64,000 bases of DNA from Octopus sinensis (Eukaryota). The notes beneath the pieces were generated by a model. The model did no database searches. It had not been told where the DNA came from and saw only the letters and a list, made by a program, of their open reading frames with translations. This document shows positions 22,714 through 52,415 of this stretch, piece after piece; within the stretch, counting starts at the first letter, position 1; each line of letters starts with the position of its first letter. Where the stretch lies: the NCBI RefSeq assembly GCF_006345805.1, contig NC_043011.1:66848464-66912463 (forward strand), read 5' to 3'. The translations under genes were made by a program, and so were the position numbers.

Positions 22714-22810
22714 CTGCAGAATTCCTGAGGATCTCGTACAGGATCTACAAAAATGTAAGCACAGAAGTGTCTTCCAACGAAATTGCATTCATGTCTATCT
22801 GACGCTGCAC
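22714..22810 (-). CDS. CRG3 exon 2 (R)[31 protein letters not shown]
   Basis: Acceptor catattttAG|G, donor CAG|GTAAAT, 97 nt, phase 1->2, open; the paralog at 52319-52415 keeps all Cys. Confidence 0.88.
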
Positions 22811-24189
22811 CTAAAATATGTGAAGTTTGTTTTGAAAATATTAAATGATTATTCCCAAAATAAGTTCCTCTTAAAATACAAATCATTTTAGTTTGTTAGG
22901 TATTCGTATGATACAGATTATACATATAGTTGCTTCATATTCTGTTTTGTGTATTTTTGAGGGCGCTGAAGACGTTTCAATATAGTTATTGTCTTATGGT
23001 TATCAGCTGACATAAATACGCCACTTTACAGGAAACATGCTATATATCGAATGTCCTCGTTCATCACGTTTCTCACTCCGATACATAATGGTGTTTGGAA
23101 ATGGCCTCCATTTATTTACCGGGTTTATCATCGATAATATTTGGAGCACGTCGTATAAGTTGCGGAGTCCAATGATTTGATTTCTACAGTTGAAATATTC
23201 CAGTCAGAGTCTACCAAATCGTGTTGCTCATCTAATGCACTTGCTCGTGCATCTGCGTGTTCACAGTTGGGACCTAAGCTTCTATGATATCATCTATTAT
23301 ACTTTAAATAAATCATATTTTGGATAAACCCTCAAGGGGTGTATTTTGACACCCTTGAATGAAACATTTCACATAATAATTACTCGTCAAAATATATGTT
23401 TAGCATAATATTCTTTCTTTTTATTTGTCTAGAAAATGCTGTTCGTTGGATTTTTCCCTTCGTAATACGACAGAATGAGGTCTCCGTTTTGCCTTTGCAA
23501 CAATCTTGTTCCGTCAATTTGTCAGCATCAAAAACACCTCGAAACAATTTCACAATACATTTTTAATAGCCCTGTTCAGGAACTTATCACAATCTTGTTC
23601 CTTGGACGTGGTATAAGAAGTTTTATATTATGAACACAACTCATAAACCAAAATATTTTGATCACACATATCGTGTTATAATGTTCTCATGTAGAATATT
23701 TGTATATATATATATATATATATATATAATATATATATATATATATATACATATATATATAAATTTTATCATGTTATATATATATTTATAAATATACAAT
23801 TTAACAAAGGAACGTAATAAAAATGGTTCTAAAGAAAGGAAAAGATTTAACTTCTCTAAAGTTGAATTATGAGATAACGGAATATTTGTTACCTTTGGAA
23901 GAATTTTTTAATAATAAAAAGCTAATGACTGTGTTCCATTAGTTTCTATTCTAATTGGCAACATATTTCTAATGAACATATTTAGATATATATATATAAC
24001 ACTTGTTTCCTGGGTGTGCGATAAGAGTTTGCTTTCCAAACACATGGTTTCATACATCCGGTCTTGTACGTGGAACTTGACTGTCACTACATAAAACTGG
24101 TGATTTCGTAATGCATTAAAGAACTCTTTTATTTAAATATTGTAAAACTGTAACGATTGCAAATGATAAAACGTGAAAGGGGATCTTTG

Positions 24190-24690
24190 TTGGAATTTTA
24201 TTGATTAATATATCACTTTGCAAAAAAAGTACAAGGTCGTGGAAGAACTCACCAAAATCGGTGTCTCTGAAAAGTTACTACAGTGGATCAAGTGTTTCCT
24301 GACAGACGGAACCCAACACATTGTTAGTCGAAGGAGTAAAATCAATGTTAATACCAGTAGCAGTGTTCCACAAGCCAGCGTTTTGGGCCCACTTATTCTC
24401 ATCATCTACATTAATGACAATTGTGACATCATCATGTACTACAACATATGACTTTTTGCAGATGATTCCCAGATCCAGAAGGTCATCATTGAGGTGGGTA
24501 ACCGGATATGTCATCAGTTTTCAGTCAGCGGGTGGAAATGAATAATAGGCTCCTGAAGGAAGACAAAATTCAGTTGCTCAACGTCGGAAAAGTAGATACC
24601 CTGAAACTCCCAACCTTCAGGTGAAACACTCATGGCATCCAACTGAATAAGCTTGGCAGCACATATAAACAGCAACGGCCTAACTTCAGA
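24190..24690 (+). mobile_element. CR1/L2-type LINE RT fragment
   Basis: SSVPQASVLGPLILIIYIND and FADDS motifs. Confidence 0.75.
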
Positions 24691-24699
24691 GAATTTGTG

Positions 24700-48629: not shown

Positions 48630-49339
48630 ATACGTATATATATATATATATATATATGTGTGTATACGTGTGCATATATATATCGGTTTATATATGTATA
48701 TATATGGTTACATATATGTGTATATATGTATGTATATATACATATGAAGTATAAAGGCGTGATTTTGCTCCCGTCCGCCGCACTGATCAGCAGCAAGCTT
48801 CACAGCTACAAACGAAATTGACCATCACATATATTCCTGTATATTTGAAACCACGCGATTCCCAACACGTGAGTAGACTTTTCTTTAACTACAAATTATT
48901 TTCATAAATTTCAAACGACCAAATAAACAAAACCACACACTCCTATGAGAGAGCATTTATTTATATATACACTTCGTCAACACCTTCTGATAACTAAAGG
49001 ATCACCCACATATTAAAAATTAGAAAAAGAAAAGAAAGATAAAATAACTGCAAGTTTATAATTCAAATACAATCACAAACTTCTCAGTATTACAGCAAAC
49101 ATTCTGTAAATCTATTCTACATACTTCTCCCTAAAAAAATAAATAAATAAAAATAATCAACAAAACAAACAAATAAAATAAAATTTAATAAAATATATCC
49201 ACCAGAGTGGTTAGCCATAAAAAAAAACTGGTCTGATAATGAAATCGTCGTTCTAATAAACACGTGGCATTGCCTTACCCAAACAGAAAACATAGGTGCT
49301 TCCTGTCAGAACGAAATTCCTAAACAGACAGTTCATATT

Positions 49340-51670
49340 TTGTTAACTCGATCTGAACAGCAGATTCAAAATAAATTAAAGCAAATCGAAGTTGCTTTGA
49401 AATTTATCACTAAACACTTCGATAAACTGAGATGTGTTTTCTCTTCGAACGCATCACCGGTTCAACAACAACAACTTCGTCAGCATCAACAACAACAACA
49501 GCATGAACCACTCATTGATTCATCTACAATGGCCGATTTGTTAAACGAAAGGATTGACCCCTCCCCCCAGTCACCAGGGTCTCACAGCAGGAAGCACCAC
49601 CCCTTCCTCTCACTGCTCCAGTAGCTCAATCATCATCACTCAACATCATGTCCTCTGCTTACTACTACTAGTACTACACCCACTATCAATCCAAAAACAT
49701 CTTTGTCTACCGCTATTTCTTGGTCTCCACCTCCTCAATCATCATCTCTGTCAACATATCTTCTCCCTACTACTACTACTACTACTACTACTACTACTAC
49801 TACTACTACTACTACTACTACTACTACTACCACTACTACTACTACTACTACTACTACTACTACTACTACTACAAATGCTACCTCAAGGAATCTACCTCTT
49901 ACAGGTCACAAACGTCGCCAAAACCTCAACAAACTATCATCTACACCTCTCACAACTCACACACGCACCTTTACACCCACTCGAAACCCCATCATTTGCC
50001 GCTATTCTCTCCGCTATAGATTATGCACTGATAGAAACTGCAAATCCACCCATTTACCTGGGACAAAACGCTCTATCCCCACAAACTACAACAGCCACCA
50101 CCATAATACATACTCTATTACAACACCACTACAACCACCAATATCACAAACAAGGAATCCTCAAATCTGCCGTTATTCCCAGCGAGACAGATTGTGTTTG
50201 CACAGGGATTGTCCCTTTACCCATCTCCCGGGGACTCGTCGGACAATTGATAATAAAAATAAAAATAAGAACCTACGACTCATATAGAAATAACCACTCA
50301 TATAAAAATAACCACAACCACAGTCACCTACAATTCCCTAGACAGGAAACCTCTTCTTCCTCTTTTTTAGCTATAATGAATCTAGCAAAAGAACTGGAAA
50401 AAAACATCCGAGCTATCACCCACCACCATCCACCACTATTACCCCACTGCACATGCCATTAAAAAGCAATCAAATAAACAAAACACCAAAACAATTAAAA
50501 CCATCCACTCTCGCCTCAACATTTTTGCTTAATGCCCAACGCATCAGCCCTTCCACCAATACTCAAAAATGGAAGATAAAATTCCTGGAGGACTGGGTCG
50601 ATGCCCATCCAAACCACATCCCTTTCTTCGTCCTCACTGAAACCCATCTTAGTAACCTTCACTTGGAAGCTGAGGTGAAAGTTAAAAATTTCAAAGCCAT
50701 TCGTGCTGATCGTGCTGGTAGAAGAAAGGGTGGGACTGCCATTTATGTTCATGATTCATTCTCAACAGAAGCTATGAACATATTTTCTAATGGATACTGT
50801 GAAACAGTCGCTGTATTCAGTCAAACCAACAACTTAATAGTAGTTGGGCTCTACAGACCACCCCAAACCATGCTTCAAGGAATGCCTCAACAACATAAAG
50901 TGTTTCATTCAGCAGTGTCAACCTGACAACATTTTAATGATGGGAGACTTCAACCTTCCCGCGGTTGGCTGGTCTACAAACAGTCTGCCGCCAGGTTATT
51001 CTCTCTCAACCCCTGACAGGGAGGCAGTGGAATTGCTTCTTGACTTCATGGATGATTTCTTCCTGTCCCAACTGGTGCTCGAACCAACGAGATGTCACAA
51101 AAACGTCCTAGACTTAATTTTCAGCAATCACACTGATACTATCCACAATATTGCAGTGGAAAAAAAACTCTACTCTCTGATCATGACATGTTTCTGTGTG
51201 ATATGAGATTTCTCCGGCCAAAATGCAAAACAAATGTCATCCCTCCTGTCCATCCATTTGACACTATGGATTTCTACAATGCAAACTGGGAAGCTATCAG
51301 TAATGATCTTGCACAAGTCGATGTGTCCTTCACGCACAGATATACACCCACTAACATCAAAAAAGTCCCGGAAGTCATTTGTAGACACCATTACAAACAT
51401 ATGTGCAAAACACACCCCATTAAGATCTGCAAACAAATCTAAGTGCAGAAGCCCTTGATATGGAAAGCTCTCATCAGGAAAATCAACACAACAAAAATAT
51501 CAACCAGCTGAAATACTACAACAGCAACACACCAACCTAACTGCCATCATGTCACTAGAGATTAAAAAACATAACCTCCAAAACAAGATGATGTCTATCA
51601 TCAACAGTCAGAGGAGAGCTGAAGAGGCCTGGGCCAATGAGAAGATCAAACTTAATCCCAACACTGGCCA
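49340..51670 (+). mobile_element. 5' part of a CR1/L2-type LINE: ORF1-like region (poly-Thr, two CCCH-type fingers) + APE endonuclease; 3'-truncated
   Basis: LLNAQ, VLTETHL, RRKGGTAIY, GLYRPP, MMGDFN, VLDLIFSN. Upstream ORF 49703-50287 has a twice-repeated C-x8-C-x4-C-x3-H. Lies in CRG5 intron 2. Confidence 0.8.
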
Positions 51671-52318
51671 AACCCTTTCTAAGTTATTATAAGTTATATA
51701 AACGTACATATATATAAAGAGAGAGAGGGAGAGAGGGAGAGAGAGAGAGTTAATGATCGAAATCACAGTCAACCGCGTCAGATAATTTGTAGCGGAAATA
51801 ACATTTCTTTCGGTGCAAGTTTAAAAACCAAAACATTGTACATGGAGATTTGCTACATTCATCAAAGAACATATCAGGTTCATTGTCGCGATTCCATATA
51901 AATACATGTAGCATTTTGGTAATAGTTTTATAAAGGGAAATGTTCGTCAATATGCAATTGTATAAATAATAAGTTAATACTGAAACCAAATGTAGGATCA
52001 TATATATATATATATATATATATAATATATATATATATATATACACACATATATATATATATACATATATATATACATATATATATATATCTACATATAT
52101 ATATATACATGTATATATATGCACACATATATATATACACACATATATATACATGTTTATATATATATGCATATATGTATATACATATATATATAGACAT
52201 ATATATATTATACATATACATATATATACTTATATAGATGACCCTAATATATTTATATATATATGTATGTATGTATGTATGTATATATATATACACTTAT
52301 AAATATAACAATATTTAC

Positions 52319-52415
52319 CTGCAGAATCCCTGAGTATCTTGGAGAGGATCTACAAAGGTGGAGGGACAGTGTTGTTTTCCAATTCGATTGCATTCATGTC
52401 TATATGACACTGCAC
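52319..52415 (-). CDS. CRG5 exon 2 (R)AVSYRHECNRIGKQHCPSTFVDPLQDTQGFC
   Basis: Same splice sites, length (97 nt) and phase as 22714-22810; open; Cys conserved. Confidence 0.88.

Follow-up and report, generated by a model that had tools for sequence, protein, structure and literature searches.

The question raised by this locus is why a short exon should differ far more between neighbouring copies of a gene than the introns on either side of it. The locus lies in a 64,000-nt stretch of the Octopus sinensis genome (contig NC_043011.1, positions 66,848,464 to 66,912,463; hereafter the window), whose minus strand carries a tandem array of small Cys-containing exons. An earlier note on this DNA had reported that exon 2 of two copies, which it named CRG3 and CRG5 and which we refer to as copies B and C, respectively, evolves about seven times faster than its intron, and had attributed this to strong diversifying selection on a disulfide scaffold. 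We compared these with copy A, the O. vulgaris unit that encodes the protein CAI9735856.1; the O. vulgaris locus carrying this gene (L001) supplied exons 2–4 of copy A together with one more unit, Z. The excess of divergence is real and stronger than the earlier note knew, as a third copy and a second exon also show it. Unless stated otherwise, counts for exon 2 refer to its 97-nt core as originally delimited, the annotated exon 2 being 118 nt long. The features on which the comparison of copies B and C is based are as follows.

22714-22810, minus strand: copy B exon-2 core, with the boundaries of the earlier note.
22811-22831, minus strand: 5' extension of copy B exon 2 (21 nt, QTSHILG) according to the annotated O. 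vulgaris model; identical in copies B and C.
22832-23700, minus strand: copy B intron 1 beside exon 2, at ~3% divergence from both copy A and the corresponding stretch of copy C (52437-53307).
52319-52436, minus strand: copy C exon 2, long form, with its core at 52319-52415.

The minus-strand alignment of the two cores (22714-22810 and 52319-52415) had no indel and showed differences at 20 of 97 nucleotides. Fourteen of the 31 full codons were changed, each with an altered amino acid, and the translated peptides matched those given previously. The adjacent intron as it was then defined (22811-23029) had six substitutions and one indel in 219 nt (2.7%). Over a longer upstream flank of 890 nt there were 28 substitutions and two indels (3.1%), in agreement with the approximately sevenfold excess claimed for the exon (Fisher p = 1.9e-9). 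Beyond the opposite end of the exon, copies B and C differed by about 3.5–5% in a clean block of intron 2. With low-divergence DNA on both sides, exon 2 is therefore an island of divergence. The differences between copies B and C were confined to 22723-22804, with unchanged stretches of 41 and 17 nt flanking them, and included runs of neighbouring change (TTCG>CGAA and CTT>ACA; three-state codons and 3–4-nt runs at 22778-22781, 22765-22767 and 22752-22760). Elsewhere in the two units, the duplicated block at 28111-29482 was collinear with 54965-56327 at 97.2% identity.

The Cys codons (TGC, TGT, TGC) were identical in copies B and C, as had been stated. The conservation of splice sites held in part: the GT donor, which agrees with the annotation, and the AG acceptor originally proposed (ttttag/GT in copy B, in frame) were conserved, but at the annotated acceptor, 21 nt farther upstream, the AG was replaced by AA in both copies (in copy B through G>A at 22832). 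The statement that none of the changes was synonymous also had to be refined. There was no purely silent codon, yet five of the 20 changes were at third positions in multiply hit codons, and it is because of these that the Nei-Gojobori method (NG86) gave a silent divergence (dS) of 0.24.

A further claim, that a signal exon with a single silent change precedes exon 2, was not borne out, as no signal-peptide exon that splices in frame was present within the 900 nt shared by copies B and C. The ATG-containing piece at 23039-23074 (MNEDIRYIACFL) had no differences between the copies, was out of frame with the exon, and lies in a region deep within a 7.4-kb intron of the sole annotated family member. 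A candidate upstream exon at 23121-23184 (KSNHW...DDKP) splices in frame and was dropped because the annotated model places this region in intron 1. An open reading frame (ORF) running from the ATG at 22888 into exon 2 was ruled out by an indel in copy C that breaks it.

Inclusion of copy A showed that the excess was not particular to one pair. Over 859 upstream nucleotides, copies A and B differed at 23 positions, A and C at 28, and B and C at 27; in the exon-2 core the corresponding counts were 25, 23 and 20, and six sites had three states. Exon-2 divergence was 21–26%, versus ~3% in the flank, in all three of these recent pairs. The flanks of copy A exon 2 were ~96% identical to those of copy B, and its core differed from those of copies B and C at 23–25 of 97 positions.

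Copy A also provided the only annotated gene model. A profile of three peptides (from copies B, C and an older window copy, G6) was searched against 1.84 billion representatives and had a single real match (E 4e-8), CAI9735856.1 (UniRef A0AA36BK08, "Hypothetical predicted protein [Octopus vulgaris]"; OX597831.1, assembly GCA_951406725.2). The O. vulgaris annotation drew on ab initio predictions as well as on transcripts and aligned proteins (PMC10700109). The protein has 155 amino acids with a six-Cys framework, and is encoded by four exons in a unit of ~12 kb with GT-AG at every intron. Exon 1 (139 nt) is unique in the window; exon 2 (118 nt, RETSYILGAVSYKLKCNEIGRSKCPDTFVDPLGDTRKFCR) has the spacing C-x7-C-x14-C and exon 3 (88 nt) the spacing C-x7-C-x11-C; exon 4 encodes a hydrophobic tail (Kyte-Doolittle 19-residue mean 1.98). 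An AlphaFold2 model of the protein from a single sequence had a predicted local distance difference test (pLDDT) score of 46.6, too low for the model to be informative. A word-indexed protein search with the genomic ORF spanning exon 2 gave no match, exact look-ups of two window ORFs returned no record, and a metagenome scan for the 5' motif of exon 2 had 0 matches. Based on these data, the copies are members of a putative orphan gene family of the octopus lineage, arranged in tandem and newly recognised here, with an evolutionary pattern already known elsewhere. Its exon-2 copies are homologous, 118 nt long, enter in phase 1, leave in phase 2 and have the C-x7-C-x14-C spacing; its exon-3 copies are 88 nt long and end in phase 0.

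Exon 3 showed the same excess of divergence. It was present in every paralogue pair, with 40–67% in the exon versus 12–34% over the 155 flanking nucleotides (p 1e-4 to 1e-8), the values for the B–C pair being 19% in the exon and 10% in the flank. The excess persisted where the introns were 20–34% diverged, and therefore recent intron homogenisation alone is insufficient to account for it. All five exon-2 copies were 118 nt long with an open frame and neither indels nor stops, and four of five exon-3 copies were 88 nt. Such constancy of length, compared to the indel-rich flanks, is good evidence that the exons were coding while they diverged. L001 was collinear with window positions 20800-5084, with mismatches of 0.6–1.2% and 41 gaps per 79 mismatches, which places the window in the O. 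vulgaris species complex. O. vulgaris has a heterozygosity of 1.22% and split from O. sinensis 2.5 million years ago (PMC10700109), and the mismatch level is compatible with either. Against this background, the orthologous copy B exon 3 (0/88) and copy A exon 1 (0/139) were unchanged, which argues that there is no standing exon-targeted hypermutation in these exons; the comparison included no exon-2 orthologue pair, as L001 ends 1.9 kb before copy B exon 2.

The order of the array along the minus strand is G6 exon 2; unit C exons 2, 3 and 4; copy D; unit B exons 2 and 3; and unit A exon 1. Its members, other than the exon-2 features given above, are as follows.

62966-63026, minus strand: candidate signal-like first exon of copy G6 (MNNLISAFTAILHFEIYFLV), phase 1, donor gtaaaa.
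62787-62904, minus strand: copy G6 exon 2, old and diverged (QTLHFVGVRVFSRDCDGLARRPCPCSFVTPLNSTFEHC), with equal length, frame and C-x7-C-x14-C spacing.
46804-46899, minus strand: copy C exon 3, disrupted by an additional 8 nt, with donor gt>ct, an in-frame stop and loss of the third Cys.
44607-44729, minus strand: copy C exon 4 homologue, 92% identical to O. vulgaris exon 4, with two in-frame stops.
39496-39583, minus strand: copy D, exon-3-like, lacking the second Cys but set between conserved intron flanks.
16865-16952, minus strand: copy B exon 3 (NISEFKSCIRRKSKACLNHFIDLELHMCP; C-x7-C-x11-C), with intact ag/gt; 0/88 differences from L001 3571-3658.
10333-10471, minus strand: exon 1 of the copy A orthologue (MAKAIREIADC...HRRF), 0/139 differences from L001; sole copy in the window.
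4984-5083, no strand: assembly gap of 100 N, after which copy A exons 2–4 would be expected by O. vulgaris collinearity.

Neither copy B nor copy C forms a complete four-exon unit. Copy B has an intact exon 3, and no exon 4 was found for it in the window. Copy C, judged by the sole available gene model, is a predicted pseudogene (exons 3 and 4 broken). The copy A exon 1 belongs to a 1.95-kb segment (9055-11004) that is missing from units B and C. Copies B and C are unlikely to be haplotigs or products of assembly duplication, given that the multi-unit array is also present in the chromosome assembly of O. vulgaris. Window positions 1-4983, beyond the assembly gap, are not collinear with L001 and may represent a mis-join or a structural difference, and copy A intron 1 has an insertion of 266 nt (9046-9311) compared to the locus in O. 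vulgaris.

The candidate signal-like exon of G6 is 78 nt upstream of G6 exon 2 and in frame with the inner acceptor. A candidate of this kind was found for G6 only, and none for copy B or copy C. This hints that some family members may possess a secretory first exon. Diverged duplicates of the G6 candidate were also observed at 63196-63262 and 3490-3558 (+).

Two repeats interrupt copy B beyond its exon-2 donor.

22563-22690, no strand: (TA)n microsatellite, beginning 24 nt downstream of the copy B exon-2 donor.
20150-22551, no strand: fragment of a long interspersed nuclear element (LINE) within copy B intron 2, absent from copy C.

Copy C has an equivalent (TA)n array at ~52000-52295, and in copy G6 the GT of the exon-2 donor is replaced by a (TA)n array (62721-62786). 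No such array lies in the exon-2 donor region of A or Z, the two copies from O. vulgaris.

How, then, did exon 2 come to differ so much? The reading that we prefer, and to which we would give about an even chance, is that loop codons were replaced in short patches after duplication, subject to a filter on frame and Cys residues and probably favoured by selection, with the copies later decaying. The units arise through unequal crossing-over or segmental duplication, as their collinearity over several kb at ~97% identity shows. Replacement of the inter-Cys codons of exons 2 and 3 follows, in short and often multi-nucleotide patches, and is visible as a pattern in the alignments. A selective filter, to which the lack of indels and stops points, would retain exon length, phase, splice sites, Cys residues and the FVDP motif. 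Diversifying selection on the inter-Cys loops may favour the replacements, for which the raw material would be clustered mutation or short templated exchange and not single point changes. Decay would follow, copy C apparently being a pseudogene already and both B and C having no exon 1.

Several results support the patchwise replacement of loop codons under a filter. Change in exon 2 was restricted to ~20 codons that were hit at all three positions, several of them with a distinct state in each of the three copies. By comparison, the 18 codons invariant in amino acid across copies A, B and C had no silent differences over 12.0 silent sites. The expected number was 4.3 at a dS of 0.24 (P 0.013) and 0.54 if the exon were of the same age as its flanks, the probability at a dS of 0.12 being 0.12. 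The absence of silent change in these invariant codons indicates that the exon is not simply old. In addition, when 20 substitutions were placed randomly, the joint probability of an open frame, three retained Cys and no purely synonymous codon was 0.003. A site-class test (similar to M1a versus M2a) placed ~10% of codons at a very high dN/dS ratio (omega), with a likelihood-ratio test (LRT) statistic of 15.7 (p 4e-4), and the pairwise omega values of 1.07–2.8 also point this way. Relaxed constraint alone was rejected as an explanation because neutral decay cannot exceed the flank rate.

A number of results weigh against this reading, in particular against its selective component. The site-class test was run with our own code on 38 codons of three sequences, and multi-nucleotide events inflate such tests. 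The earlier note had named a ratio of non-synonymous to silent divergence (dN/dS) of 1 or less, with more sequences, as grounds for abandoning selection, and the B–C pair came close to this with an NG86 ratio of 1.07 (dN 0.257, dS 0.240). The three recent pairs had NG86 omega values of 1.07, 1.06–1.23 and 2.5–2.8. Maximum likelihood with the MG94xHKY model on a star tree of the three copies gave an omega of 1.5–1.7, above 1 but not significantly so (LRT p 0.25–0.38). In the same framework the neutral branch lengths were 0.06–0.13 for the exon versus 0.013–0.019 for the flank. Fixing the branch lengths at the flank values raised omega to 11–13 with a worse fit (p 0.002), the silent component of the exon being 5–9 times the flank rate (p 0.002), and this worse fit rejects a model of flank-rate mutation plus selection on single steps. 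The B–C changes were spread flatly over the codon positions (7/8/5). Change was also not limited to the exon, as proximal non-coding positions were altered at 7 of 81 versus 23 of 832 farther out (p 0.013). The changes at 23516-23600, most of them specific to copy C, form a second cluster within the intron.

The state of the genes themselves bears in the same direction. Copies B and C have neither exon 1 nor the annotated acceptor AG and, with exons 3 and 4 of copy C broken, there is therefore no selection on copy C now. A secretory precursor of the toxin type was not found, in that no in-frame signal-like exon lies in the flank shared by B and C, and exon 1 of CAI9735856.1 is not a signal peptide (N-terminal Kyte-Doolittle 19-residue means 0.3–0.9). 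A protein-collection search with CAI9735856.1 found only itself, with no homologue outside O. vulgaris, and Pfam and PDB sequence searches gave nothing meaningful. Together, these data retain one part of the original proposal of diversifying selection, an excess of change centred on exons with a Cys scaffold; they did not establish a dN/dS above 1, and the architecture of a signal exon followed by a mature exon was not found.

The serious rival is a mosaic history without positive selection, which we consider possible but on balance doubtful. It holds that the exon-2 cores are older and, the Cys framework aside, near-neutral, and that their surroundings have been homogenised or exchanged by non-allelic gene conversion or unequal crossing-over, with conversion tracts stopping at the heterologous exon core. 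Consistent with such a history, the level of divergence varies along the units: between copy A and copies B and C it is ~3% in the DNA upstream of exon 2, rising to ~9% in intron 2 and to 12% in the surroundings of exon 3, and between copies B and C it is 3% upstream, 3.5–5% in the proximal part of intron 2 and 10% in the exon-3 surroundings. It would also accommodate the silent component above that of the flank (p 0.002) with omega near 1–1.7, the raised proximal intron, and the intronic clusters at 22860-22868 (a complex change specific to copy B, with four substitutions and one indel) and 23516-23600. Some silent states that are shared with separate older paralogues (for Leu, CTA in both A and Z but CTC in both C and G6) point the same way. 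However, older cores should have accumulated silent change throughout, and the 18 invariant codons are silent-free, a result that speaks against a uniform dS of 0.24 (P 0.013) and leaves one of ~0.12 unrejected. The differences between B and C all fall within 22723-22804, with 41 and 17 clean nucleotides beside them, and the changes unique to A, B or C are finely interleaved, with no two-parent tracts. The B–C flanks are no closer than those of A and B, despite A being from another genome, and the excess remains in old paralogues whose introns are 20–34% diverged. Finally, a search of the window and L001 (96 kb) found no k-mer of 13 nt or longer that could have served as donor for the variable patches.

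Less probable again, and in our view improbable, is a purely mutational island, in which changes became clustered in and around the exon of copies that were already non-functional, through template switching or error-prone repair beside the long (TA)n arrays, and the frame and Cys residues were kept by luck or as the legacy of earlier constraint. An omega of about 1 and the flat 7/8/5 spectrum would be expected of such a process, and the runs TTCG>CGAA and CTT>ACA, the complex intronic change at 22860-22868, the start of (TA)n at 24 nt beyond the donor in copies B and C, its replacement of the donor in G6, and the incomplete appearance of B and C, with C broken, are all consistent with it. Luck sits poorly, however, with the joint probability of 0.003 for frame, Cys and no purely synonymous codon, and with five exon-2 copies free of indels amid indel-rich flanks. 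The adjacency of changes was within chance (P 0.16), and the 23 nt between the exon and (TA)n have only two differences. Exon 3 has the same excess with no neighbouring microsatellite, copy A has an equally diverged exon 2 with no (TA)n after it, and the orthologous exons 1 and 3 are unchanged. Scarcely credible is the idea that the pairs of exons 2 and 3 are mutually exclusive cassettes of one large Dscam-like gene, with the intron flanks as selector elements. The constant lengths and phases (118 nt with a phase 1 start; 88 nt with a phase 0 end) and the conserved intron flanks adjacent to the exons fit this arrangement, but the copies are about 10–30 kb apart and interleaved with copies of exons 1, 3 and 4 and with LINEs, B, C and G6 are upstream of the sole exon 1, and the annotated gene uses one cassette within its 12-kb unit. 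We also speculate, as a long shot, that octopuses have in their germline a tandem family of six-Cys loop proteins anchored in the membrane, whose loop exons would be diversified through the exchange of short templated patches from a reservoir of partial and pseudo-exons; this would be an invertebrate counterpart of the pseudogene-templated diversification of recognition molecules, and not a family of toxin-like secreted peptides.

The window as a whole has 33% G+C and contains numerous (TA)n arrays and CR1-like LINEs. The CR1-like LINE at 57460-60407 (+) has endonuclease (405-aa) and reverse-transcriptase (577-aa) ORFs whose database relatives are at best 53% identical, and an inverted partial copy of it, 93% identical, is present at 40923-43634 (-). 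A second retroelement family has three copies (13069-15452, 29793-32173 and 34482-35216; 96–98% identity), one of which occupies the position expected for exon 1 upstream of unit B. A foldback inverted repeat at 2452-2825, with arms at 2495-2620 and 2658-2783 (126 nt, 94%) that continue at 2452-2494 and 2783-2825 (43 nt, 93%), resembles a miniature inverted-repeat transposable element (MITE) or hairpin element. In addition, we observed a remnant ORF similar to the N-terminal helix-turn-helix (HTH) region of a Tc1/mariner-like transposase (18817-19323, minus strand), a long, probably non-coding tract of low complexity in which two overlapping frames give ORFs rich in Thr and in Leu (49554-50462, plus strand), and a segment at 1699-1860 (+) with weak similarity (E 1.5e-4) to part of copy B intron 1 (23070-23212) that may be the relic of an inverted unit.

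If the replacement of loop codons is adaptive, the array would represent an undescribed, lineage-restricted cephalopod family that evolves like toxin, gamete-recognition or immune genes, and its simple anatomy, in which two tiny framework exons are set between conserved introns, would make it a tractable entry point to what octopuses use their orphan genes for. It would also bear on an old question concerning toxin genes, in which exons outrun introns at silent as well as replacement sites, and for which the octopus array already offers three copies of ~3% age and a comparison with a sister genome. Should the pattern instead reflect patchy conversion within an array in decay, it serves as a warning that changed codons which are all non-synonymous, and exons more diverged than introns, can arise without a dN/dS above 1.

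Comparison with known systems places the octopus family among, but not squarely within, those with hypervariable exons. Conotoxins have a conserved signal exon and introns and a hypervariable mature exon, in which both dS and dN are raised and Cys codons show position-specific conservation. The octopus copies share with them identical Cys codons (TGC/TGT/TGC), hypervariable inter-Cys codons, raised silent change and a mollusc host. They differ in having no conserved signal exon and no conotoxin family detected by Pfam, and in that an exon resembling a membrane anchor follows the framework exons. The peptide-binding exons of the major histocompatibility complex (MHC) are a case of concerted evolution, where recombination homogenises introns and selection keeps exons distinct. 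Low-divergence intron beside high-divergence exon, in a mosaic along the repeat unit, is common to this system and the octopus array, whereas the silent-free invariant codons and B–C flanks that are not closer than those of the cross-genome A–B pair set the octopus array apart.

Together with that to the conotoxins, the closest likeness is to the three-finger toxin and phospholipase A2 multigene families of snake venoms, in which accelerated evolution and "accelerated segment switch in exons" (ASSET) have been described (PMC2474615, PMC2711939; habu genome PMC6062510). As in the octopus, these are multigene families with introns that are alike and short exon segments that are radically different, with Cys residues and exon structure retained. 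The octopus family, which is known here from sequence, differs from the snake toxins in having a hydrophobic C-terminal tail and no secretory signal architecture, and in that its clustered changes also reach the proximal intron and several of its copies are decaying. As in toxin families, the octopus paralogue exons outdiverge their introns while the Cys framework and exon structure are conserved. The pattern also corresponds to ASSET, as exon segments have been switched between flanks that are ~97% identical (ASSET is defined by >85%) with the Cys residues kept, although a similar complex change is present in the intron at 22860-22868.

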